Sequence record: KJ019086.1
Length of the DNA: 64,000 nucleotides
Strand: one strand, 5' to 3'
Shown here: one piece after another, positions 8,275 through 38,334 of the stretch
Layout: each line of letters begins with the position of its first letter
Numbering within the stretch: the first letter of the stretch is position 1
Notes under the pieces: model-generated
Seen by the model: only the letters and a program-made list of their open reading frames with translations
Databases searched by the model: none
What the model was told of the DNA's origin: nothing
Made by a program: the position numbers and the translations under genes

Positions 8275-9174
8275 ATGAAGGAACGCAGAAAGTATCCAAC
8301 CGTATTGAGGTATCCAGGCGGTAAGTCTAGGATTATCTACTATTTGTTTAGGGAAAATATGATCCCTAAGAATGTCAAGGAATACCGTGAGGGTTTCCTA
8401 GGTGGGGGTTCTTGTGCTCTTGCGTTCTCTGTGATGTACCCAAACACCCCAGTTTGGGTCAATGATCTTTACTACAATCTGTATATCTTCTGGACACAAC
8501 TCCAGAAGAATCCAGATCCACTTATCAATCGTCTCCTAGAACTAAAGGACGAAGCCTGTGATGCATCAGGTACAGAAGAACTAGAGAAAAAGCATAGAAA
8601 ACTCTACACAGATATGCGTGATCTCATTAACACCTCTAGTGATCACCTTGATATTGCAACCTCCTTCTACATTCTAAACCGATCTAGTTTCGGTGGATTC
8701 ACTGAACAAAACAAGAATGCCTTCATCCGAGACTCATACAAGAATACTATTTTCTCTCAGAGTAAAATCCGTAAGTTGGCTAATATCTCTGAGATTATCC
8801 AACCCTGGAGAATTACCAATACACACTACAAGGAACTAATGAGAGCTCCTGGTGATGATGTATTTGTGTTCCTAGACCCTCCATATCTAATCAAGGATAT
8901 GTTGTATGGTAAGGACAAGGAGATGCACACTGGGTTCTCTCATGAAGAGTTTGTGAGTGAGTGTAAAGGTTCTACACATGACTGGATGATTACCTACAAT
9001 GAACATGAATGGTTGAGATCCCAGTTCGCTGACTATCATATGGAGTCTTTCGAGTTCCGTTATAGTCTCGCCCACAGGGAAGAGAATGGCAACAAGAAAG
9101 AAGAACTCCTCATAATGAACTATGAGATTCCTCGTGATATCCCAAACCCACTAGAGGTAGTTTTGTATGGATGA
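8275..9174 (+). CDS. dam: Dam-family (D12 class) DNA adenine methyltransferase
   Basis: LRYPGGKS, EGFLGGGS (motif I) and FLDPPY (motif IV). Confidence 0.92.
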   Translation: MKERRKYPTVLRYPGGKSRIIYYLFRENMIPKNVKEYREGFLGGGSCALAFSVMYPNTPVWVNDLYYNLYIFWTQLQKNPDPLINRLLELKDEACDASGTEELEKKHRKLYTDMRDLINTSSDHLDIATSFYILNRSSFGGFTEQNKNAFIRDSYKNTIFSQSKIRKLANISEIIQPWRITNTHYKELMRAPGDDVFVFLDPPYLIKDMLYGKDKEMHTGFSHEEFVSECKGSTHDWMITYNEHEWLRSQFADYHMESFEFRYSLAHREENGNKKEELLIMNYEIPRDIPNPLEVVLYG

Positions 9175-9622
9175 TCTAGAGCTAGAGTATCATCTTTATC
9201 TGGATGGAAACCCTATTCAGACACTGAAGGATGACGCTAGTACAATGACTTTAGCCAAGAAGAGGGTTATTGGTCCTTACATTCGTAGAGCTGAATCTTT
9301 TATTAAAATATCAGAACCATTTAGGGAACTACTTCGTCTTGATGATGGTAAGGATAAACTTCTAGATGCAATAGGTGTTGTCTGGGCACACTACTTTGAA
9401 CATAAGATTAACAAGAAGTATATGGTTATCCCTAAGGATGCATCTCTTGATTTTATGGAATACTTTGGTACTATGGTACAGAAGGATAAGTTTCCAGATG
9501 ATAAATATATTAAGAAAGCTCAGCGTATCATTCTCTCTCACGAAAAGAGTATTGATGCTTTCATTAAGGCTTTTCATAGTATCCGTTTAGCCAACGACAA
9601 ATATCTCTCCCTGAAGAAATGA
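9167..9622 (+). CDS. hypothetical protein
   Basis: 151-aa ORF overlapping both neighbours. Confidence 0.75.
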   Translation: MDDLELEYHLYLDGNPIQTLKDDASTMTLAKKRVIGPYIRRAESFIKISEPFRELLRLDDGKDKLLDAIGVVWAHYFEHKINKKYMVIPKDASLDFMEYFGTMVQKDKFPDDKYIKKAQRIILSHEKSIDAFIKAFHSIRLANDKYLSLKK

Positions 9623-12480
9623 TCACACCGAAGTCCCTACTATCATTCCTATCTGAAGCCGCTGATTCTGAGGCTGCACAACAGGCTAAGGAGATGGGTT
9701 TAACCTCTGCCGGTTATGGTAACTGGCGAGATAAACAGGGCAATGTTGTTGCCAAAACTGTAGATGGTCAGTTGGTGATGATTGACGCCAAGGCAGATCC
9801 TACGGCTAGACCAGCGGCACCTGAGGAGGAAATGCCACCTGAAGAGGAGGAGGAGCCCCAGTTTGTAGAACCAGATCCAGATATGGTTGAGACAGTAGCT
9901 AAGGGTCTTTCTGGTGGTAGATATAATATTGCATCAGCACAAAGGAAGAAAGCGTTACTGGCTTCTGCTAGACAGATATTAATCAATAAACAGATCCAAG
10001 ACGCTCAGATGCAAGCCGATGCTGAAGCTCAGGCAGCGGCACAAAACCCACCAGAACCTACTCCAGAGGAGTTGGCACAACAACAGGCGGATATGGAACT
10101 ACAGCAACAGAATGCTGTAATGGATACCGAACTGAAGGCACAGAGTGTTGAGAACGGGAAACTGGACCTTCAGATGAAGAAGGACCAGATGAAGCAACAG
10201 AAAGAGGCAGAGAAAGAAGCCAAGGCTATGGATAAGTTAGCCAAGAAGGCTCAGAGTCAGAAAGATCCTGGATCTATGGCTCAGAGGATGGCTAATGATG
10301 CTGAGTATGAGGCACAAGTTTCGAAGGATGGGGAAGAAGCTCTACTTGATGTTCAGACTGAACCTGATGTGGCTCCAGCGCCTAAACCAAAATCAAAGGC
10401 GTTAGATAAGGCTAACAAGAAAGCCAAAAAGATAGATACCACAGATTCTTCTGATAAAGAACTAAGATCTGCTGCTGATGATGTTATTCGTAGTCTACTC
10501 AGTGGAAACACTAAGAGGGCAGATAAAACATATAAAGAAATTAAGAGAAAGTCATTCAGTCAACTAAGAAATCAGACAGATAAACCACAGAAGAGGGAAG
10601 ATCCTAAAGTAACAGAGGAGAGATTTGCCTCTCTAGTTGATAATATCGATCCTAACAATCTAGGACCTGGTATGAGATATGATCCCATCAGAGGAAAGGC
10701 TTCCGCTAAGACGGCGGTTCTAAGTGGATTTGATTCACCAGAAGATTTCCCAGAGTTTCAATCCAAAGAACTAAAAGGTCTCACCTCACTTATCAGAGAC
10801 TATATTGAGAAAGAGAACACTATGTGGTTCAACTCCGAGGTAGATAGGAAGAGTGGTGAAGGTGATTTCTCCCTAGATGGTTCTGAATACTTTAGTGATG
10901 AGGAAGCCAAGTCAGTGAATACAGATCTCAAGAACTCTGCTGATATTTCACAGTTCTTAGATTGGGGTCTAACCTCAACCAAGGCTGGGAAGTTTGGTGC
11001 GCAGAAACTAGCCTATCCACAGGAAAGAATGGCTCTTATTGATAACTATGATAGTGAGGAATCTACATCACCAGAAGAACTTGTGGCTAAATCAACCATC
11101 AATAAGGTTTCAGATAATGAGGTGGATAAATCTTGGAGTACTCTTTCTGGTTCTAAAAAGAAGTGGTTTGAGACTGCTGGTCACGGTAGGGGGGGATCAC
11201 ACCCATACTGGAAGGAGAACCCAGAAGAGTGGGGCAAAGCTATGTTGAAGAGGTATCTAGAACAGGGTGGTAGGGATGGATACCTCCACTTTGAGGGAGC
11301 CCCACCACTACAGTTCAAGGATATGGCAGCTGATCACGTAATCTCCTACGCAGATAACACTGATTATTGGAAGAAGAAAGCACTAGAAGAAGATCCAAAC
11401 CTACAGGGATCTGAACTAGCAGAGAGGGCAAAACGGATCTCTGATGACCCATCTAACATTATCTTCACCCGATGGGGATTCAATCAACAGCAGAAAGATA
11501 AGAATCCTCTATGGGATGTTAGACAGAGATATGAGAAAGAATCTAAACAGGGTGCCTCGAAGCAAGATAATAAGGCACAGGAAAGTCAGAATAAAAAGAG
11601 GAGAGGTGAACTTCGTAATGAGTTGTATTGGAAACCACTTCAGGAAGCAGTTGGTGAGATAACAAAGAGGGACAAGAGTGGAAACATGAAGTTAACTCGA
11701 GAGGGTTATGATGAACTTCGTAATTATGCGAAAACTGGGTATCAGATGTTAGACAAATCTGGATATGGTAGAGACCTATCCAAATCTGCTGGCTTCTACC
11801 AGAGAAACGCTATGACAGACGCGTATCGTGCTCTAATTGGATCTATCAAACCTGGTATTCAGATCTTTGGTAGAGACAGACTCCGTGGTGGTGACGGACA
11901 ACAGGCGAGTGACTGGCAGGGTATTGACGGAAAACACTCCAATACTGCGGCAGATGGAAACATAGATCAGGGATCAATGGTTGATCCAGGCACTGATTAT
12001 GTGAAGCACGCTATGGCACAACTACACCTATTCGGTGGTGATAAAGGTAGACTTCTCGCCAAAGAATCTATGGATAGAATCAAGAGAGCGGGTGATGCTC
12101 TAGTTGTTGGTGATATTGGAACTGGAATGTTCACGAAATATATCGCTGATAACCTATCTGCTATGAAGCAACTAGCAGACGAGGGTGGTTTGGAATTGGA
12201 TTATGATGATGAATCTGGAGATCACCAGAGAATCCTTAACGCAAACATCATAAAGAATGTTCTAAAGGAGAAGAACCCTTCTGGTTATCGTTTGGAAGAA
12301 GATATCTTCAATGAAGATAGACCAGCGATGAGAGGAAACATAGCGAAGAAGAGGAATGATGAAGAGTTCACTAGACTGAATGAGGATCTACGTGCACTTA
12401 TGAATCCTGGTGAATGGGATGAGATCTATAAGGATACTGTTCTTGAACAGTTTGAATATGATGGGGAACTTATGTTATAA
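9619..12480 (+). CDS. 953-aa probable internal-head protein with a central HNH-like nuclease motif
   Basis: N-terminus SFLSEA plus a module shared with the cytidyltransferase; long Q/E/K/P-rich linker; YLEQGG...ADHVISY...DDPSN...FNQQQKD. Confidence 0.55.
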   Translation: MITPKSLLSFLSEAADSEAAQQAKEMGLTSAGYGNWRDKQGNVVAKTVDGQLVMIDAKADPTARPAAPEEEMPPEEEEEPQFVEPDPDMVETVAKGLSGGRYNIASAQRKKALLASARQILINKQIQDAQMQADAEAQAAAQNPPEPTPEELAQQQADMELQQQNAVMDTELKAQSVENGKLDLQMKKDQMKQQKEAEKEAKAMDKLAKKAQSQKDPGSMAQRMANDAEYEAQVSKDGEEALLDVQTEPDVAPAPKPKSKALDKANKKAKKIDTTDSSDKELRSAADDVIRSLLSGNTKRADKTYKEIKRKSFSQLRNQTDKPQKREDPKVTEERFASLVDNIDPNNLGPGMRYDPIRGKASAKTAVLSGFDSPEDFPEFQSKELKGLTSLIRDYIEKENTMWFNSEVDRKSGEGDFSLDGSEYFSDEEAKSVNTDLKNSADISQFLDWGLTSTKAGKFGAQKLAYPQERMALIDNYDSEESTSPEELVAKSTINKVSDNEVDKSWSTLSGSKKKWFETAGHGRGGSHPYWKENPEEWGKAMLKRYLEQGGRDGYLHFEGAPPLQFKDMAADHVISYADNTDYWKKKALEEDPNLQGSELAERAKRISDDPSNIIFTRWGFNQQQKDKNPLWDVRQRYEKESKQGASKQDNKAQESQNKKRRGELRNELYWKPLQEAVGEITKRDKSGNMKLTREGYDELRNYAKTGYQMLDKSGYGRDLSKSAGFYQRNAMTDAYRALIGSIKPGIQIFGRDRLRGGDGQQASDWQGIDGKHSNTAADGNIDQGSMVDPGTDYVKHAMAQLHLFGGDKGRLLAKESMDRIKRAGDALVVGDIGTGMFTKYIADNLSAMKQLADEGGLELDYDDESGDHQRILNANIIKNVLKEKNPSGYRLEEDIFNEDRPAMRGNIAKKRNDEEFTRLNEDLRALMNPGEWDEIYKDTVLEQFEYDGELML

Positions 12481-12506
12481 TATAGAGAGTCTCTCTGTAT
12501 TATAGT

Positions 12507-13280
12507 ATGATTGATCTGATCCACGAAGAGTGTATCGCTGGTATGAATAAACTCCCAGAGGGTAGTGTGGATGTGATTGTTACTTCCCCTCCCTACAATC
12601 TGGGTATCGATTATTCCACATACTCTGATAAGAAGGGTAGGGTAGAGTATTTGTCATGGATGCGGGATGTATTTCTTGCCGCCAGGAGAGTTCTAAAGGA
12701 TCAGGGACATCTTTTTCTAAATGTTGGTTATTCTAATATTGATCCTTGGGTTAACATGGATGTTGCACAGACACTCCGTGAAGATTGGGTGTTGCAGAAT
12801 AATATTTGTTGGGTTAAATCTATTCACGTTGGGGATAAAACAACAGGACACTTCAAACCAATCAACTCCAAGAGGTTTATTAACCCAACATGGGAGTCAC
12901 TATTTCACTTCACTAAAGACGGGAATGTGGAGATTGATAAACTAGGTGTAGGTGTTCCCTTTGAGGTGAAGTCTAATATCAAGAGGTGTGGTCACGCACA
13001 GGACCTACGGGACAGGGGAAACAGTTGGTTTGTTCCCTATCCACACATCGCTAGGAAGCACCAGAAAGCAAACCATCCCGCTATCTTTCCTCCTGATCTG
13101 GTGAAGTTTTGTCTAAAGACTTCTGGTATTGATAAAGGTGTTCTGATGGATCCTTTTGTTGGAACTGGAACTTCAGCGTGGGTAGCACAAGAGATGGAAT
13201 GGGACTTTATAGGTTATGATATTGATGAAGAGTATTTGGATTTTGCTAGATCGAGGTTAATGAATGTCACAGCGTTTTGA
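12507..13280 (+). CDS. beta-class DNA amino-methyltransferase (probably N4-cytosine)
   Basis: VTSPPY near the N-terminus, HPAIFP, and DPFVGTGTS near the C-terminus. Confidence 0.9.
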   Translation: MIDLIHEECIAGMNKLPEGSVDVIVTSPPYNLGIDYSTYSDKKGRVEYLSWMRDVFLAARRVLKDQGHLFLNVGYSNIDPWVNMDVAQTLREDWVLQNNICWVKSIHVGDKTTGHFKPINSKRFINPTWESLFHFTKDGNVEIDKLGVGVPFEVKSNIKRCGHAQDLRDRGNSWFVPYPHIARKHQKANHPAIFPPDLVKFCLKTSGIDKGVLMDPFVGTGTSAWVAQEMEWDFIGYDIDEEYLDFARSRLMNVTAF

Positions 13281-14010
13281 TGTTGTTATTGGCAACCCCC
13301 CATACCAGGATGGTAGTGGGGATAAAGAGAAGGGGTTATCTGGATCAAAGAAGAACCTATACTCTGCCTTTATCACCAAGAGTATTGAACTACTAAAACC
13401 CAACGGATATCTATCATATATCTGTCCACCTGGATACATCAAAACAACTTCTATTGAGAAACCCTCACCACTATTCAAACTAATCCAACAGTATAATCTT
13501 ATCTCTGTTGACTTCAATTGTAAGAAATACTTTCCAACAGTCTCCCTACCAGTCATCACCCGTTTCCTTCTACAGAACACAAAGGAATATAAGGGAACTG
13601 ATTTTGGTAGTGAGGTCATTGATATTTCTCTTATGGATTATATACCTATCCATTGTTCCAAAGATACACTGAAACGGTTAGAAGAGGTAGTATCCAAGAA
13701 GAAAACCCTAAACTTTAAGAGAGATGATAGTTTTGGGGTAGTGAATAGGTGTATCAAAGACAAAACTAACTTTGTCGTTATAGCACAAGTATCACCATCC
13801 AAACTAGAAGTTTGTGTGAATGATGTATTGATAAATAAAAAGGGAAACAGGAAACCAGTTCATGTTATGGTATGTGATAATACTAGGCATGCGGAACGTA
13901 TTGGTGATATAATGAGAAGCGAGAATGCCACATTTTTAAATACCACCCTACGATATGGTGATGGAAACGTCTATCCTGGAATCATTAACTACCTAAACTA
14001 TGAAATTTGA
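13264..14010 (+). CDS. gamma-class/Eco57I-like N6-adenine MTase, catalytic plus TRD half (no motif I)
   Basis: Starts FDVVIGNPPY; Y.AFI.K...LLK..GYLSYI.P; in-frame stop directly upstream. Confidence 0.75.
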   Translation: MSQRFDVVIGNPPYQDGSGDKEKGLSGSKKNLYSAFITKSIELLKPNGYLSYICPPGYIKTTSIEKPSPLFKLIQQYNLISVDFNCKKYFPTVSLPVITRFLLQNTKEYKGTDFGSEVIDISLMDYIPIHCSKDTLKRLEEVVSKKKTLNFKRDDSFGVVNRCIKDKTNFVVIAQVSPSKLEVCVNDVLINKKGNRKPVHVMVCDNTRHAERIGDIMRSENATFLNTTLRYGDGNVYPGIINYLNYEI

Positions 14011-14028
14011 TGTTGTTATTGGCAACCC
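13276..14028 (+). repeat. 23-nt identical direct repeat TTTGATGTTGTTATTGGCAACCC at 13276-13298 and 14006-14028
   Basis: Read directly; similarity continues through CCATA(C/T)CAG. Confidence 0.9.
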
Positions 14029-14905
14029 TCCATATCAGAATCCTGATGGTGTAAAGAACAAGAAGATCTGGTTATCTTTCTTTGATCTTGGTGTCTCTCT
14101 CCTAAAGGAGGGTGGTACTATGTGTTATATCACGCCCACCACTCACTTCTGGAGTTTGGGTAGAAAGTGGCAAACTGGTGTGTCTGCTGATATTCTACTG
14201 AAACAGAACAACCTTCGTAGTGTAGATTTCACAACATCCAAACACTTCCCACAGGTTGGTGACTACATCTGCAACTATGTTCTACGCAAAGAACCTCCCA
14301 GTGGTATGGTAGATGTTATTGAGAAAGATGGGACAGAGGTTCTACGCCCACATGATGATGTCTATGATTGTGATGAGGAGAGACAAAAGGCAAAGTTCTT
14401 CTCTGCTATGAGAGAACTACGAGAGAAGTATGGGAAGTATCATATTCCCCACGACACAAGAGATAAGAGTCATTATAGTCAGACACAGGAGGGTGTGTAT
14501 CAGCATCCTACTTATATTTCGGCAGCAAAACAGATATGGTATGCTGACAGTCCTACACTAGGAACTGATACATTAAAGATTATTATGAATATGTCTTCCT
14601 ACTTCTGGAATATCAATGATACTCAGAAGTATATGAGGATTGATTCAGGTCCTGGTGTTGGTTTATTGGGAAGAATGTTGGCAATTGATAGTGTGGAAGA
14701 TGGTGAGAAGATAGTTGAGTATCTAACTTCACCACTAGTGAAGTTCTACATTGACTGTATGAAGAGAACGAGTCCATGGAATCATGGGGTCTACCAGTTG
14801 CCAAAGTGTCACCATATGACAGAGGATGAGATTCTGGAAGAAATAGGTTATAATAAGGATGAGTTTTATAGCATGTATCCAGATAGATTAAATGTCAAAG
14901 TCTAA
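14000..14905 (+). CDS. second gamma-class MTase catalytic plus TRD half (no motif I)
   Basis: Starts MKFDVVIGNPPY; LLKEGG.MCYITP; C-terminal SPLVKF typical of Eco57I-like TRD ends. Confidence 0.75.
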   Translation: MKFDVVIGNPPYQNPDGVKNKKIWLSFFDLGVSLLKEGGTMCYITPTTHFWSLGRKWQTGVSADILLKQNNLRSVDFTTSKHFPQVGDYICNYVLRKEPPSGMVDVIEKDGTEVLRPHDDVYDCDEERQKAKFFSAMRELREKYGKYHIPHDTRDKSHYSQTQEGVYQHPTYISAAKQIWYADSPTLGTDTLKIIMNMSSYFWNINDTQKYMRIDSGPGVGLLGRMLAIDSVEDGEKIVEYLTSPLVKFYIDCMKRTSPWNHGVYQLPKCHHMTEDEILEEIGYNKDEFYSMYPDRLNVKV

Positions 14906-15395
14906 ACAGAGTTGGTATAAAACATGGACTAGTATGAAGTGGAGGTGTGATAATAACATTGACAAATATAAAGACATTACATATTGTGACGAATGGAAAG
15001 ACTCCGATCAGTTCCACGCTGATATGGGGGACAGACCAGAGGGGAAGACACTGGATAGGATAGATGGGGCGATGATATACTCACCAGAAACATGTAGATG
15101 GGCGACCCCACAGGAACAATCAGAGAACAGACCTACATTCAACTATAACTATAACGGAATGTCTCTGATGGAAAATTGTCGACAGAGGTCACTTCATTAC
15201 CCCACAATTCTGGGTAGAATACAAAGAGGATCAACAATTAGTGAAGCGCTGGAAACCCCAGTGGTAGATTATAGAATAATGTATGAAGGGAAAACATTAG
15301 CGGAAGTGTGTAGGGAACGGGGGTTGACATATAGGAAAATATATACTAGGATCAGACGAGGTATGGAAATCAAGACAGCAATTGAGAAGGGTTGA
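14892..15395 (+). CDS. HNH homing endonuclease
   Basis: W.SMKWRC...F.ADMGDRPEGKTLDRID...Y...CRWAT..EQ..NR, plus two C-terminal HTH-like repeats. Confidence 0.85.
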   Translation: MSKSKQSWYKTWTSMKWRCDNNIDKYKDITYCDEWKDSDQFHADMGDRPEGKTLDRIDGAMIYSPETCRWATPQEQSENRPTFNYNYNGMSLMENCRQRSLHYPTILGRIQRGSTISEALETPVVDYRIMYEGKTLAEVCRERGLTYRKIYTRIRRGMEIKTAIEKG

Positions 15396-15420
15396 CAAGG
15401 GGTCCCAGGTGTGTTATACT
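15392..15420 (+). promoter_or_regulatory. sigma70 promoter TTGACA-N17-TATACT for the dam2-sigma pair
   Basis: 15392-15397 and 15415-15420, with an extended TGTG. Confidence 0.8.
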
Positions 15421-15445
15421 ATCTGGGTAGGTTAGGTTATTCTGT

Positions 15446-16327
15446 ATGGTGAAACCCCTGTTTAAGTGGACTGGTGGAAAGGGGCGACTATTCCAGAAGT
15501 ATCAAGATCTAAACTTCTTCCCAGAGGCAGACAGGTTCGACACATTTGTTGACCTGTTTTTTGGTGCTGGGTCAGTCACCCTTTGGGTTGCGGAGAAGTA
15601 TCCAGATAAGAAACTCATTATTAATGATAAGAACACGGAACTTATGGGGTTATATACCCAAATACGTGATAACTGGGGTGAGTTTAGTGAGCACTATAAG
15701 AGAGTGTATAACGTATTCCTAGACACCCCAATAGAGAAAAGAAAGGCACTCTATAACTGTTATAAGAAGAGATATGCATGGAACTATAAGTGGTTGTCAG
15801 AAGCAGAGATTGCGGCAAACCTCTTGGTTATGATGAAGATTAACTTCAATGGTATTTGGTTAGCGTATAAGATGTATGGTCGTAGGTATTCTACGGCACC
15901 AGGGAAGATTGATTATAAAGAAAGTATCTTTGGTATGGAGAATGTGGAACAGTTCCGTCAAGTCCTACTACGGGCAACACTCTACAATAGATCCTTTGAG
16001 GATGTTCCTATTCCTGATAACTCCTGGGTATTTGCTGATCCACCATACAGAGACACCAGAGATATGTATTCCGATACATTCACCGATGAACTTCAGTCTA
16101 AACTGGCAAAGTTCATAGTTTCTACAGACGGACTATACTGTGAGTCTAATAAAGAAACTGGTGATGGTTTCTGGGGAGAACACTTCCCTATGGAGAACAT
16201 CCACTTCACAGATCACAAATACACTTGTGGTTATGGGGGATCCATTAACCCAGTCACTGAAGTTCTTATAAAGAACTATGGGAATAATATCCCACAACCA
16301 ACTACCCTTGATTCCTTTTTTAACTGA
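15446..16327 (+). CDS. second Dam-family DNA adenine methyltransferase
   Basis: KPLFKWTGGK, DLFFGAGSV and FADPPY. Confidence 0.88.
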   Translation: MVKPLFKWTGGKGRLFQKYQDLNFFPEADRFDTFVDLFFGAGSVTLWVAEKYPDKKLIINDKNTELMGLYTQIRDNWGEFSEHYKRVYNVFLDTPIEKRKALYNCYKKRYAWNYKWLSEAEIAANLLVMMKINFNGIWLAYKMYGRRYSTAPGKIDYKESIFGMENVEQFRQVLLRATLYNRSFEDVPIPDNSWVFADPPYRDTRDMYSDTFTDELQSKLAKFIVSTDGLYCESNKETGDGFWGEHFPMENIHFTDHKYTCGYGGSINPVTEVLIKNYGNNIPQPTTLDSFFN

Positions 16328-16329
16328 TT

Positions 16330-17022
16330 ATGCAAAAGAAAAACCGTATCTCCCACGAAGAAGAAATTAAACTATGTCGTCAGGCACAACTACAAGATCA
16401 TACATCCAAGTATGCTATGACTAAAATGGTTAGTGCTAATATTGGGTTGGTTGAGAAACTCGCTAACAAACTCTACATCAAGAATGATCAATACTCTTTC
16501 GATGATCTATACCAGGAGGGTGTATTTGGTCTTATCAGAGGTGTGAATAAGTTTGATCCTAGTGTTGGATGTAGGTTCTCCACCTATTCCTACTACTGGA
16601 TTTATAGTTATATTATGAGGTATTGTGAGAATAACCTAGGCAAGATCCGTATTCCCACTCACCTCCGTGAGAAAATGAGGAAACAGAAAGATAATAAGGT
16701 AGAGTTGGATAAACTAAAATCAAAGGTTCCTTCAGTAGTATCATTGAATACAATAGTGGGTGAATCACTATCCTTGGATAATGTAGTTACATACACCGAG
16801 AATATCTCATTTGATGATGAGATGGAACATGTTTTGGTTGTTATGGGTGAGGTTTTAGATGAAAGAGAACACCAGGTTCTCTGTAGTAGGTTTGGTATTG
16901 GTGGTGAGAAACCACTATCCCAGAGAGAGTGTGCTAAACTACACAATGTTACCCATGGTGCTATCTATTTGATTGAGAAGAAATCAATCAAGAAAATCAA
17001 ACACTATATGGGGTATAAATAA
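16330..17022 (+). CDS. sigma70-family RNA polymerase sigma factor (RpoD/RpoS-like, divergent)
   Basis: Region 2 N.GLV...DDLYQEG..GLIRGVNKFDP..G.RFSTY..YWI; region 4 LDERE..VL..RFG. Confidence 0.88.
   Translation: MQKKNRISHEEEIKLCRQAQLQDHTSKYAMTKMVSANIGLVEKLANKLYIKNDQYSFDDLYQEGVFGLIRGVNKFDPSVGCRFSTYSYYWIYSYIMRYCENNLGKIRIPTHLREKMRKQKDNKVELDKLKSKVPSVVSLNTIVGESLSLDNVVTYTENISFDDEMEHVLVVMGEVLDEREHQVLCSRFGIGGEKPLSQRECAKLHNVTHGAIYLIEKKSIKKIKHYMGYK
17014..17021 (+). promoter_or_regulatory. T4 late promoter TATAAATA
   Basis: Exact motif 17 nt before the ATG at 17039. Confidence 0.75.
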
Positions 17023-17038
17023 TACTATAGTAGATTCT

Positions 17039-18253
17039 ATGGCGATGAGATCGTTTCTAACATTCCTAACCGAAGCCCGTTCTCGTGCATCTAAAAGAGC
17101 CAAAGAGTTGGGACTCACTGGCAACGGTCACGGTGGATGGGAAGATAACGAAGGTAACCTAGTCGCTATGACTGTGAAGGGTGATCTGGAGTTTGTGAAG
17201 GGAAGAGAACCCAAAGAGGAAGAAGAACCCGATGAAAAGAATTCTGTTCCTGGAGAGGAGCCAACATCCAACAAAGCGCCTGGGGTAGATCCAGAGAACA
17301 CAGATACTCCAAGACAGAAAGAACCAGCGCCTGTTCCCAAAGATAAGGGTATTCTAACTGTTGCTTTCGGTAGGTTTAACCCTCCTACGATTGGACATGA
17401 GAAACTAATCAATACTGTAGCATCATATTCAGAGAACGGTGATTACATAATCATTCCCTCTAGGAGTGAGGATAAGAAGAAGAACCCTTTAGATATCGAC
17501 ACTAAAGTTAGTATCATGAGGCAGATGTATCCAACACACGCCGAGAAGATTGTTAACGATCCACATAACAGAACCATCTTTGATGTTATGCGTAAGGCGC
17601 ATAATGATGGTTACGCTGGTATTAGGATTGTTGGTGGTGGAGATAGAGTTAAGGAATATGAGAAGTTAGCCAACGCATATAACGGATCTACCTATCAGTT
17701 TGATGAAATTGATGTAGTAAACGCTGGTGACAGGGATCCAGATGCAGAAGGTGCAGAGGGTATGTCTGCTTCCAAGATGAGAAAAGCAGCAGCTGATAAC
17801 GACTTTGCTTCTTTCAGAAAGGGAATGCCAAAGACTCTCAGTAACGATCAGATGGTTTCTATCTACACTCAGGTCCAGAAGTCTATGGGTGTAACACCTA
17901 AGGAAGCTGTAATTGAAAACTGGAAAGTTGCTCCTAGACTGTATCCACAGGAACTGAGAGAGGCTTATATCCAAAACGAAATCTATAATATTGGTGATAC
18001 TGTCAGTCATGACACCACTGGTATGGTAGGTAAGATCGTAAGAAAGGGAACTAACCACTTGATCTGCGTAACAGAAAGTGAAGAGATGTTCAAGACCTGG
18101 ACACAGGATGTTAGTCCTGCGGATCTAAAACCACAACCAGCAATCTCTACTCCAAAGGAGAGGGAAGTTGGAACAGATTCCCTTAGATCTTTCCTTCAAA
18201 GGATCACTCCAGGAGAGAAAGAGCAATCCTTTATAAATAAACATAAGAAATAA
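17039..18253 (+). CDS. cytidyltransferase-like (nucleotidyltransferase) protein
   Basis: VAFGRFNPPTIGHEKL (HxGH-type), GGGDRV and MSASKMR; N-terminal FLTFLTEA. Start set downstream of the late promoter. Confidence 0.85.
   Translation: MAMRSFLTFLTEARSRASKRAKELGLTGNGHGGWEDNEGNLVAMTVKGDLEFVKGREPKEEEEPDEKNSVPGEEPTSNKAPGVDPENTDTPRQKEPAPVPKDKGILTVAFGRFNPPTIGHEKLINTVASYSENGDYIIIPSRSEDKKKNPLDIDTKVSIMRQMYPTHAEKIVNDPHNRTIFDVMRKAHNDGYAGIRIVGGGDRVKEYEKLANAYNGSTYQFDEIDVVNAGDRDPDAEGAEGMSASKMRKAAADNDFASFRKGMPKTLSNDQMVSIYTQVQKSMGVTPKEAVIENWKVAPRLYPQELREAYIQNEIYNIGDTVSHDTTGMVGKIVRKGTNHLICVTESEEMFKTWTQDVSPADLKPQPAISTPKEREVGTDSLRSFLQRITPGEKEQSFINKHKK
18232..18239 (+). promoter_or_regulatory. T4 late promoter TATAAATA
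   Basis: Exact motif upstream of ORF 18273. Confidence 0.7.
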
Positions 18254-35216: not shown

Positions 35217-36215
35217 ATGAAAGCTTTAATCTCTGGTATAACTGGGCAGGATGGATCCTATCTTGCTGAACTTCTACTGAAGAAGGGGTATGAAGTCCAT
35301 GGTATTATTCGTAGAACCTCCTCGTTTAATACAGGAAGAATCGATCATATCTTCGATCAGTTACACCTCCACTACGGGGATTTGACTGACTCCCTGAACA
35401 TAGTCTCTATCATTAAGGAAGTGGAACCTGATGAGATATACAACCTAGGGGCACAGAGTCATGTGAAAGTATCCTTTGAGGAACCTGAATATACAGCACA
35501 GACTGATGCTCTGGGAACCCTAAGAGTATTGGAGGCAGTTCGTCTCCTAGGTATGACAGATAAGGTTCGTATCTACCAGGCATCCACTAGTGAGTTGTAT
35601 GGGTTGGTACAAGAGACACCCCAGAAAGAAACAACACCTTTCTACCCACGATCTCCATATGGTGTAGCTAAACTCTATGGATATTGGATTGTAAAGAACT
35701 ATCGTGAGAGTTATGGGATGCACGCCAGTAGTGGTATTCTATTCAACCATGAGTCACCACGACGGGGTGAGACTTTCGTAACCCGTAAGATTACTAGGGG
35801 ACTATCCCGTATTAGTACAGGACTACAGGATTGTCTATACCTAGGTAATCTAAACTCAAGACGAGATTGGGGTCATGCTGAAGACTATGTGGAGGCTATG
35901 TGGTTGATGTTACAACAGGAAACTCCTGATGACTATGTGATTGCCACAGGTAAAGAGTATTCAGTGAAGGACTTTGTAGAGGCATCTGCTGAATACTTTG
36001 GTATGAAGATTGAGTGGCAGGGTGAAGGATTGGATGAAGTGGGTATAGATAGATTTACAAAGAAGGTTGTCGTTCGTGTGAGTGACAAATACTTCAGACC
36101 AGCAGAGGTTGAAACTCTCTGGGGTGATCCCACTAAGGCTAAAGAGGTATTGGGTTGGAAACCTAATCATACCTTTGCTTCCCTAGTAGAAGATATGTGT
36201 ATCTACGGTCAGTAA
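35217..36215 (+). CDS. gmd: GDP-mannose 4,6-dehydratase
   Basis: [43 protein letters not shown] and RDWGHA. Confidence 0.97.
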
Positions 36216-36217
36216 TT

Positions 36218-37144
36218 ATGGAAAAAGGTGCAACGGTAGCAGTATTTGGTTCGGGTGGATTGGCTGGAAGTGCCATCACCAGGGCACTCAGGTGTTCTTT
36301 TGGGGGGTATAAGATTCTTACTCCTAGGAGTAAAGAACTAGACCTAAGAGAACAAGCAGATGTTCGTAGTTGGTTTAAGCATAACAAAGTTGATTATGTA
36401 TTCTTAGCTGCTGCCTTAGTTGGTGGTATCATGGCTAACAAGACTAGAAAGGCAGAGTTCTTACATGACAATCTAATGATGCAGTGTAATGTAATTGACT
36501 CTGCATACTATAGTGGAGTGAAGAAACTTCTATTCCTAGGTACTTCTTGTATCTATCCAGCAGGAAGGCACCATCCACTAGTGGAACATGAACTACTCAC
36601 AGGACTATTAGAACCAACCAATGACGCATACGCAATCGCAAAGATCGCAGGGATCAAACAATGTGACTTCTACCGAGAACAATATGGATTTGATGCTATC
36701 TCTATCATGCCTCCTAATCTATATGGTCCTGGAGATAATTTCAATGAGGGATCAGGACATGTCCTCGCCTCACTAATGAATAGGTTTCACCTAGCGAAGG
36801 AAGCAGGTGCATCTAGAGTTGAATGTTGGGGTGATGGATCACCTATGAGAGAGTTTCTATATGTGGATGACTTAGCAGATGCTTCCTTATACTTTATGAA
36901 TAGTTATAGTGAGTCTGGGCACATTAATACTGGGACTGGTAGGGATGTAACTATCAAACAACTAGCGGAGACTATTGCTGATGTAGTTGGATACAAAGGT
37001 GAGATAGGTTGGGATACAACTAAACCCAACGGAAACCCAAGGAAACTACTTGACAGCAGTAGGGCAAACCTGTTAGGATGGGAACCCAAGGTTAAATTTG
37101 AAGACGGAATCAAACTCACATACAACTGGTATCTAGCACAATGA
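36218..37144 (+). CDS. fcl: GDP-4-keto-sugar epimerase/reductase (Fcl/WcaG; possibly ColC)
   Basis: GSGGLAG, LAAALVGGI, GTSCIYP, YAIAKIAG, NLYGPGDNF and REFLYVDD. Confidence 0.92.
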   Translation: MEKGATVAVFGSGGLAGSAITRALRCSFGGYKILTPRSKELDLREQADVRSWFKHNKVDYVFLAAALVGGIMANKTRKAEFLHDNLMMQCNVIDSAYYSGVKKLLFLGTSCIYPAGRHHPLVEHELLTGLLEPTNDAYAIAKIAGIKQCDFYREQYGFDAISIMPPNLYGPGDNFNEGSGHVLASLMNRFHLAKEAGASRVECWGDGSPMREFLYVDDLADASLYFMNSYSESGHINTGTGRDVTIKQLAETIADVVGYKGEIGWDTTKPNGNPRKLLDSSRANLLGWEPKVKFEDGIKLTYNWYLAQ

Positions 37145-38334
37145 CAAAGATTACAAATGGATATACGTGGCCTCTTATGAAGGACACTGTGACCAAGAGA
37201 GATAGGTTGAGGATGGCAAAGTTTATCCTCACCAGTGATAGACTAACACAAGGTAAAGAAGTTCGTAAGTTTGAGGAGCAGTGGAGTGAGTGGCTTGGAG
37301 TTAAACATTCTCTTTTTGTTAGCAGTGGCAGTACCGCTAACCTACTTCTTGTGTCTGCTTGGAAGGAATTATACGAGATCCCAGACCAGTCGAAAGTAAT
37401 TGTACCTGCTTGTACTTGGGTAACTAATGTTGCTCCTATCATCCAGTGTGGTTTGACTCCAATCTTTTGTGACATCAACTTAGAAGACTACTCCTTTGAT
37501 CTGGATAAACTACAGGATATTCGTGATGAATATCACGATGACATCAGAGGTATCTTTGTTACTCACCTCCTAGGATTTCCTGCTAATGTGGAAAAGTTTC
37601 GTGATGTTTTCCCCGACGCTCATATTCTAGAAGATGTATGTGAGAGTCACGGAGCAGTCCTCCCTAGTGGTGATAAGGCGGGAACCTTTGATGTTGGTGG
37701 CACATTTAGTTTCTACTTTGGGCACCACATGACTACCATTGAAGGTGGTATGGTGAGTACTAATGATCCAGAACTCTATGATCTAATGAGAATGAAGCGT
37801 TCTCACGGGTTAGCGAGAGAATCACTATACTTTGAAACATACAAAGAGAAGTATCCTGATGTAAATCCACAGTTTCTCTTCGTTACTGAGGGATATAACT
37901 TCCGTAATACTGATCTAGCTGCTGTATTAGGACAGTCTCAACTGAAGAGACTAGACAGTATGATTGGGATTCGTAACAGGAACTATGAGTTATACCAACA
38001 ATTACTAAAGAAACACGAACATGACCTTACACATGAGTATGGTGGTTCTTTCTATATCCCCTCCACACAGGGGGATGTAAGTAGTTTCTGTTTTCCATTT
38101 GTAGTTGATAATATGCACTGCTATCTTAAGTTAAAAGAACTTCTAGAAGAATACTATGTTGAGTATCGACCTATTGTGAGTGGTAACCTCCTACGACAAC
38201 CATTCTTGAGAGAATATTCTGCTGAGTGTCCCAAGGCAGATATAGCCCATGAAAAGGGACTATATATTGGGAATAATCACTTTGTAGATGAGTCTAACTT
38301 TCACATGCTAGATGAGATTTTGAGCCAACTTTGA
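37141..38334 (+). CDS. colD: PLP-dependent GDP-4-keto-6-deoxy-D-mannose 3-dehydratase (ColD-type, DegT family)
   Basis: VSSGSTAN, EDVCESHG, TFSFYFGHHMTTIEGG with His at the Lys position; RSHG and no Fe-S Cys cluster. Confidence 0.75.
   Translation: MTKITNGYTWPLMKDTVTKRDRLRMAKFILTSDRLTQGKEVRKFEEQWSEWLGVKHSLFVSSGSTANLLLVSAWKELYEIPDQSKVIVPACTWVTNVAPIIQCGLTPIFCDINLEDYSFDLDKLQDIRDEYHDDIRGIFVTHLLGFPANVEKFRDVFPDAHILEDVCESHGAVLPSGDKAGTFDVGGTFSFYFGHHMTTIEGGMVSTNDPELYDLMRMKRSHGLARESLYFETYKEKYPDVNPQFLFVTEGYNFRNTDLAAVLGQSQLKRLDSMIGIRNRNYELYQQLLKKHEHDLTHEYGGSFYIPSTQGDVSSFCFPFVVDNMHCYLKLKELLEEYYVEYRPIVSGNLLRQPFLREYSAECPKADIAHEKGLYIGNNHFVDESNFHMLDEILSQL

Follow-up and report, generated by a model that had tools for sequence, protein, structure and literature searches.

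How can two consecutive viral genes that begin at the catalytic motif of a DNA methyltransferase, with nothing of the cofactor-binding half ahead of it, encode working enzymes? This question is raised by a locus in Synechococcus phage ACG-2014f isolate Syn7803US17 (KJ019086.1), a T4-like cyanomyovirus with a genome of 226,849 bp. We analyzed a 64,000-nucleotide stretch of this record, here called the window, in which a position equals the record position minus 124,000. By Megablast, positions 12400 to 15500 of the window match the record of this isolate at 100% identity. It contains two overlapping open reading frames (ORFs), ORF1 and ORF2 (Table 1), which the record annotates as hypothetical proteins. 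The initial annotation, made from the sequence of the window, had regarded them as exchangeable subunits of a split methyltransferase, joined by a 23-nucleotide repeat and dependent on an S-adenosylmethionine (SAM)-binding partner encoded elsewhere. Our analysis makes it likely that ORF1 and ORF2 are alternative large subunits of a naturally split gamma-class (Eco57I/TaqI-like) N6-adenine DNA methyltransferase, with the phage protein Syn7803US17_51 as the small subunit supplied in trans. The natural split of a gamma-class methyltransferase is in itself well supported by computation, as the partner gene, its adjacency or fusion to similar halves in other phages, the score of the predicted complex, and purifying selection agree with the split enzyme first proposed.

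Both ORFs open at motif IV (FDVVIGNPPY), with ORF1 starting MSQRFDVVIGNPPYQ and ORF2 starting MKFDVVIGNPPYQ, two to four residues ahead of FDVV. In-frame stops lie just 5′ of them, one codon before the start of ORF1 (TGA, 13261 to 13263) and two codons before that of ORF2 (TAA, 13994 to 13996), and a GAGG precedes the ATG of ORF1 by 7 to 8 nucleotides. The GNPPY of the motif (residues 10 to 14 in ORF1 and 8 to 12 in ORF2) is invariant in both family alignments. No SAM-binding motif I was detected in either ORF, and coverage by the 171-position Pfam profile Eco57I (PF07669) starts only at position 73, spanning 73 to 171 in ORF1 and 73 to 169 in ORF2. Motifs X and I to III, which single-chain gamma-class enzymes carry N-terminal to motif IV, are missing from both chains, while motifs V to VIII and a C-terminal target-recognition domain are present in both (Pfam match; models superpose on M.TaqI, CamA, and PglX). 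Past the shared start, the two proteins diverge as the initial annotation had described and can be aligned only across the first ∼93 residues (37% identity). The AlphaFold2 (AF2) model of ORF2 has a predicted local distance difference test (pLDDT) value of 91. The model of ORF1 has a pLDDT of 80 and an unconfident N-terminal 30 residues, as is expected of an unpaired edge strand in a lone subunit; its best match in the Protein Data Bank is M.TaqI (TMq 0.56). By sequence and by fold, CamA, M.TaqI, PglX, and BsaXI match best, and the C-terminal parts of both models are TaqI/CamA-like recognition domains. A candidate cryptic motif I in ORF2 (DSGPGVGLLG) was rejected: in full-length relatives, which carry a motif I of their own further upstream, the segment aligned with it belongs to the recognition domain.

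The point at which the ORFs begin is a recurrent one. Full-length relatives of ORF2 (356 to 520 amino acids [aa]) have ∼100 to 130 additional N-terminal residues that include motif I and end at the same MKFDVVIGNPPYQ, and several distant full-length relatives align over 86 to 94% of ORF2. The junction sequence M-(K/Q)-FDV(V/I)IGNPPYQ is found in 22 of 25 relatives, so that the start of the phage ORFs coincides exactly with an internal methionine that is strongly conserved. Many homologues in the ORF2 family are 301 to 302 aa long, share 51 to 97% identity, and start at motif IV without exception. Among 35 viral loci encoding FDVVIGNPPYQ, 11 are ORFs with a start at most 8 residues ahead of the motif and a stop just upstream. 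Even long fused proteins keep the methionine two residues before FDVVIGNPPYQ (22 of 25 relatives in the database and ∼20 of 35 viral loci), which may be the sign of a junction prone to fission or of an internal start.

The partner expected by the initial annotation, a stand-alone ORF with motif I, was found in a genome-wide search. A hidden Markov model (HMM) of the N-terminal half (N-half) was built from the pre-NPPY parts of 24 full-length relatives and run on the six-frame ORFs of the entire genome. It returned one strong match (E value, 3.7e-20), with the runner-up at an E value of 0.09 and no second N-half in the full genome. The match is Syn7803US17_51, a 134-aa "hypothetical protein" at record positions 36115 to 36519, outside the window and ∼100 kb upstream. 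It contains motif X (GEVFTP), motif I (FLDNSAGCGNF), motif II (YCVELMED), and motif III (VRANALEYD), matches the Pfam domain N6_Mtase over profile positions 20 to 90, and ends about where the C-terminal halves (C-halves) start, with a strong terminator hairpin next. The remaining NPPY-type genes of the genome are two Dam-like enzymes and one complete beta-class enzyme only. A full motif set is obtained by adding the N-half (X and I to III only) to a C-half (IV to VIII and the recognition domain only), and neither alone is complete. The comparison set consisted of 26 near-identical ACG-2014f records, the assembled contigs of four metagenome runs, and a scan of metagenome contigs; the N-half and ORF2 co-occur in the same 26 ACG-2014f records. 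The N-half ends in FGNP, which we considered as a possible remnant of IGNP, with GGCAACCCC shared, but other N-halves have FGEP or FGKP, and the resemblance is probably a coincidence. On both sides of the gene just 3′ of the N-half (record positions 36538 to 36574 and 37160 to 37196) lies the same terminator hairpin, which overlaps a promoter-like site (AAGGGGGGTAGGCACCCCCCTTTTTTTGTGCCATAAT). These units resemble the promoter-early stem-loops of T4-type phages, which are thought to shuffle early genes in those phages.

The two halves occur side by side in other phages. In a related marine phage, the next gene after that of an ORF2 homologue (P0040; 70% identity) encodes a 127-aa N-half, and the two genes overlap at ATGA. 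The same C-half-then-N-half order is found in Prochlorococcus phage P-SSM2, where PSSM2_036 (193 aa, starting MKFTLAIGNPPY) precedes PSSM2_037, as well as in S-SKS1 and the viral contigs L021/L046 and L025. The opposite order is found at five loci (L020, L024, L027, L037, and L052), and three single proteins (P0061, P0096, and P0185) have motif IV at the start and the N-half module at the end. The stand-alone N-half profile matches 6,614 cluster representatives at an E value of ≤0.001 and 2,682 at ≤1e-10. Among the best 150 matches, 107 are no longer than 200 aa and 26 are 201 to 300 aa; the long proteins among them carry the module N-terminally in 11 cases (the canonical gamma order) and C-terminally in 5 (the permuted beta order), and one 444-aa protein has it in the middle. 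The family therefore comprises fused proteins, halves split in either gene order, and fusions in the permuted order. These states are the pattern expected of circular permutation by fission and fusion. At two further loci, a stand-alone N-half comes after an Eco57I-like enzyme that appears complete or is fused to a helicase. In S-CAM7 (L017; NC_031927, 40670 to 44221), the N-half follows a ResIII helicase and a 348-aa methyltransferase whose N-terminal part is short and atypical, and in MA01 (L018; 161527 to 165769), a 1,074-aa ResIII-methyltransferase fusion precedes the N-half.

The absence of ∼100 to 130 N-terminal residues of the full-length relatives, together with the location of the ORFs in a hypervariable island, might suggest that ORF1 and ORF2 are truncated, decaying, and functionless remnants of full-length genes. 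This is very improbable, as selection and a conserved family length contradict decay. The length of the ORF2 family holds at 301 to 302 aa from 97% down to 51% identity with an invariant NPPY, both ORFs are predicted to fold confidently, and the same split recurs across many phages. The ratio of nonsynonymous to synonymous substitution rates (dN/dS) for ORF2 is 0.18 to 0.27 within the species and 0.13 in the comparison with the marine relative; at 0.09, the ratio for the matching N-half shows conservation as well. ORF1, ORF2, and the N-half are alike under purifying selection.

Cofolding provided a predicted structural view of the proposed split methyltransferase. ORF2 modeled with SAM and an orthologous N-half gave ipSAE scores of 0.88, 0.87, and 0.88, against 0.01 for the best of three controls; for comparison, 58 of 80 solved complexes and 2 of 110 mismatched pairs attain that mark. 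The predicted interface places ORF2 residues 1 to 13 (strand beta-4 and NPPY) and 23 to 44 against motifs X, I, and III of the N-half, and in the model, its geometry is that of one continuous Rossmann fold. The first 15 residues of ORF1 match 11 of the 13 ORF2 interface-core residues. We infer the following arrangement. Each large subunit would bring the beta-4 strand with its NPPY loop, motifs IV to VIII, and its own target-recognition domain, and motifs X and I to III would come in trans from the single small protein Syn7803US17_51. The small subunit would complete the Rossmann sheet against the first 13 residues of the large subunit and the helices that follow, and the SAM pocket would form there. 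One cofactor subunit probably serves two specificity subunits, and one SAM-binding subunit with two catalytic and recognition subunits would yield two methylation specificities. The halves would assemble in the infected cell, the ORF1 and ORF2 holoenzymes would methylate DNA at different target sequences, and phage DNA may thereby be protected from host restriction.

Several points weigh against this arrangement. The halves lie ∼100 kb apart in this genome, unlike the adjacent pairs elsewhere, and are probably in different transcription units. Stand-alone N-halves also adjoin apparently complete methyltransferases, such as gp056/057 of S-CAM7 and genes 86 and 88 of Bellamy (with gene 87 between them), and the N-half may therefore have other or additional partners. 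The N-half used in the cofolding is an orthologue with 55% identity to Syn7803US17_51, with the contact segments conserved between the two, and single-chain methyltransferase folds remembered by the model may account for part of the high score of the complex. The proposed pairing of ORF1 with the N-half rests on the sequence identity of those 11 of 13 interface-core residues. The Bellamy locus (L054) has its stand-alone N-half near an Eco57I-like enzyme.

The proposed enzyme shares features with several known systems. The single-chain gamma-class enzymes (PF07669; M.TaqI, CamA, and the methyltransferase module of BREX PglX/BrxX) have the same NPPY, motifs V to VIII, and C-terminal recognition domain, but their motifs X and I to III are within the chain, N-terminal to NPPY, whereas the phage has a separate 134-aa protein ∼100 kb away. 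The cyanobacterial C5 enzyme M.AquI, which is naturally bisected, and artificially split C5 methyltransferases consist of two complementing polypeptides, for which PMC5944983 cites Karreman & de Waard 1990 and Pinarbasi 2002; the proposed phage enzyme would resemble them in this. The cut in M.AquI falls between domains, separating motif VIII from the recognition domain (PMC5944983), and its genes are adjacent, whereas the phage enzyme would be an N6-adenine methyltransferase cut inside the Rossmann fold between motifs III and IV; one small subunit would also face two alternative large subunits, with the genes far apart. The type I (HsdM/HsdS) and type IIB (BcgI and BsaXI) systems likewise place specificity on an exchangeable polypeptide, and the combination of subunits can change the sequence that is methylated. 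Their S subunits contain recognition domains only, whereas the exchangeable phage subunit would add the NPPY loop and the constant subunit would be the cofactor half; no restriction partner was identified for the proposed phage enzyme. Phase-variable shufflons, as in hsdS inversions and other programmed inversions (PMC9881135), embody the same idea of alternative specificity modules with a conserved sequence at the junction, but they depend on inverted repeats and a site-specific recombinase; the repeats of the phage are direct, no recombinase gene lies nearby, and rearranged forms were not seen in the isolates and contigs.

The circularly permuted order of beta-class enzymes (IV to VIII, recognition domain, X, and I to III), seen, for example, in the methyltransferase upstream of ORF1, is that of the C-half-then-N-half gene pairs and of the P0061, P0096, and P0185 fusions. 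In contrast to the beta class, the phage halves and fusions belong by sequence to the Eco57I-like gamma lineage and not to PF01555, and the halves are separate genes in the phage of the window. Duplication is the textbook model for circular permutation of methyltransferases. Methyltransferases are given as the example of this model in a review (PMC3320104). If the halves assemble as predicted, the occurrence of fused, split, and permuted-fused states side by side would make the origin of the alpha, beta, and gamma classes by permutation directly testable. No published description of this gamma-class split was found in literature searches. If correct, the proposed enzyme would represent a new kind of split, with a DNA adenine methyltransferase that is naturally divided within its Rossmann fold and in which a shared cofactor subunit serves exchangeable specificity subunits. 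It would give phages a cheap route to varied protective methylation against host restriction, and it would account for thousands of short "hypothetical" N-half genes and of motif-IV-start "truncated methylases" that are now annotated as unknown or broken. It would also be a natural two-piece adenine methyltransferase comparable to the split enzymes engineered for targeted methylation.

The locus is a hypervariable island with four arrangements. Type A, that of the window, has the 953-aa protein, the beta-class methyltransferase, ORF1, ORF2, an HNH endonuclease, and Dam, and type B (4 records) has the same order without the HNH gene. Type C (2 records) has a different 796-aa protein, a 23-nucleotide spacer, ORF1, ORF2, and Dam. 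In type D (19 records), an 892-aa protein overlaps ORF2 by 11 nucleotides and is followed by Dam, and ORF1 is absent. ORF1 is thus present in 7 of the 26 records and ORF2 in all 26. At least one type D isolate (US34) also has a 393-aa full-length Eco57I-like enzyme near the N-half, and the genome of the window lacks it at that position. The methyltransferase repertoire therefore varies between almost identical phages. The chances are about even that the whole amounts to combinatorial phage methylation, in which a constant SAM-binding mini-subunit is combined with interchangeable catalytic and recognition cassettes that are gained and lost and the family represents a living fission-and-fusion route to permutation.

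These arrangements also bear on whether the C-halves act without the phage N-half, either as DNA binders or base flippers that lack catalytic activity or together with a different partner, for example, a host protein or the large, variable protein with an HNH motif that is encoded upstream. The halves are far apart here, helicases or large proteins often neighbor these modules, and, both in type D and in the marine relative, the gene immediately before the ORF2 homologue encodes a homologue of the large protein. Two genes, however, lie between the large protein and ORF2 in types A and B. No SAM-binding motif is conserved in it; the motif-I-like GDIGTGMF of the 953-aa protein in the window, examined as a candidate, reads GKIGSQEW in those orthologues located immediately before ORF2 homologues. 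The fusions join C-halves to N-halves and not to other proteins, and the strict conservation of NPPY would argue for catalysis. Such an independent role is accordingly improbable in our estimate.

The tandem ORFs are joined by the exact 23-nucleotide repeat that had been reported, each copy of which holds the TGA of the preceding gene (Table 1). The repeat is not expected by chance (0 matches in 100 shuffles, even with 3 mismatches allowed). Similarity around the repeat extends to 57 nucleotides (77%), and its seven identical codons exceed expectation given the shared amino acids and the codon usage of the genome (P ∼0.004); the shared GGC codon accounts for only 4% of the genome's glycines. 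Much of the DNA identity nevertheless follows from protein constraint, because the MKFDVVIGNPPYQ peptide is near invariant across the family. The exact 23-mer had no match in IMG/VR, and a relaxed 33-mer was found at five loci in metagenome contigs, one of them ACG-2014f-like with the arrangement of the window. A divergent contig (L062) has the same order of beta-class methyltransferase, ORF1, and ORF2 with nonidentical 5′ ends (longest shared run, ∼11 nucleotides), and the ORF1 stop there lies in a GTGA overlap rather than within a repeat. The order of the three genes is thus old, with the exact repeat confined to this lineage. The repeat is not kept as DNA wherever the cassettes stand in tandem, as seen in L062 and in one wild variant with three synonymous changes inside copy 1.

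The initial annotation had also proposed that recombination between the 23-nucleotide copies deletes, duplicates, or swaps C-halves and so diversifies the methylome, a process that would be compatible with a split methyltransferase. The content of the locus does vary among near-identical isolates, and T4-like phages recombine efficiently. Homology between types A and C begins at 13270 to 13276, the 5′ edge of copy 1; ORF1 is near identical between them (1 change in 732 nucleotides), with flanks that differ by 1 to 5%. Some metagenome contigs break at 13300 and 14034, just past the two copies, but these may be paralogues or other phages that share the conserved stretch. Only the left boundary of ORF1 coincides with a repeat edge. 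The boundary of the ORF2 cassette is the ATG at 14000, 6 nucleotides before the repeat, in type D isolates and three metagenomic contexts. The predicted 730-bp deletion product, joining the ORF1 start to the ORF2 body, occurs in no isolate or contig, and no deletion, duplication, swap, or chimera at the repeat was found in the 26 isolates, the four metagenome runs, or the contig scan; this absence is weak evidence, because contigs drop rare variants. The synonymous changes in the wild variant, the nonidentical 5′ ends of L062, and the constraint on the MKFDVVIGNPPYQ peptide further argue against switching at the repeat. Variable cassette content stands, recombination between the copies is unproven, and switching driven by the repeat seems unlikely; local gene conversion or a past crossover in the repeat stretch is plausible. 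Mapping a breakpoint at copy 2 by single-nucleotide polymorphism density was abandoned, as it is confounded by a divergent tract specific to the window beside the HNH gene.

The stop codons within the repeat raise one more alternative. Both upstream genes end in TGA after a U-rich codon, with the downstream ORFs in the +1 frame, and a +1 ribosomal frameshift at UUU-UGA (13275 to 13280) and AUU-UGA (14005 to 14010) could fuse the ORFs onto the upstream genes as C-terminal extensions. This is barely credible, as ORF1 of type C lies 23 nucleotides past a TAA with no overlap, the ORF1 stop of L062 is in a GTGA overlap, and the ORF2 homologue of the marine relative starts 28 nucleotides after the upstream gene. 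ORF1 has its own GAGG and ATG, and neither upstream protein would place a usable motif I to III beside motif IV.

Table 1 Features of the proposed split-methyltransferase locus in the window (KJ019086.1 record position minus 124,000)
Feature	Position	Strand	Remarks
Promoter-like site (TTGAAT, 18 nt, TATAAT)	12452..12481	+	5′ of the overlapping beta-class methyltransferase, ORF1, and ORF2 genes; consensus match only
Beta-class N4/N6 DNA methyltransferase, complete	12507..13280	+	Pfam N6_N4_Mtase, E value 5.7e-44, residues 21-247; SPPY near N terminus, DPFVGTGT near C terminus; TGA 13278-13280 within repeat copy 1
ORF1, C-half cassette 1	13264..14010	+	248 aa; motifs IV-VIII and TaqI-like target-recognition domain, without SAM-binding half; Pfam Eco57I; phrog_14586
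Repeat copy 1	13276..13298	+	Encodes F-D-V-V-I-G-N-P of ORF1; holds TGA 13278-13280
ORF2, C-half cassette 2	14000..14905	+	301 aa; motifs IV-VIII and CamA/PglX/TaqI-like target-recognition domain, without SAM-binding half; Pfam Eco57I; phrog_3689 positions 66-347 of 348
Repeat copy 2	14006..14028	+	Encodes F-D-V-V-I-G-N-P of ORF2; holds ORF1 TGA 14008-14010

The beta-class methyltransferase upstream of ORF1 is context and not the partner of ORF1 or ORF2, because it is missing from type C isolates (KJ019146), which retain ORF1. Five methyltransferase-type genes lie within an 8-kb part of the window (8275 to 16327), namely, a Dam-like gene (8275 to 9174), the beta-class gene, the two C-halves, and a second Dam-like gene (15446 to 16327), after which an RpoD-like sigma factor gene is found (16330 to 17022). 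The free-standing HNH endonuclease gene (phrog_3377; 14892 to 15395) is present in this isolate only, among the 26 records, and three of the four metagenome runs contain the HNH-less joint (14832 to 15391). The last ∼280 nucleotides of ORF2 beside it (14600 to 14883) show ∼30 differences from all other isolates compared, a pattern resembling a co-conversion tract of the homing type.

The 953-aa protein (9619 to 12480; phrog_3561, no Pfam match) is mislabeled "cytitidyltransferase". Its first ∼210 residues are conserved, the C-terminal two-thirds are replaced between isolate types (953, 892, and 796 aa), and it has an HNH-like D-H...N motif region. An N-terminal motif of ∼50 residues (FL.EA...A.E.GLT..G.G.W.D..GN.VA.TV.G.L) is common to otherwise unrelated proteins, including the 953-aa protein, a nucleotidyltransferase, and a kinase-like protein with two copies of the motif (9619 to 9790 and 16973 to 18253 in the window; L004, 1011 to 3359). 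This motif could serve as a shared tag for targeting or packaging and is probably the source of the mislabeling.

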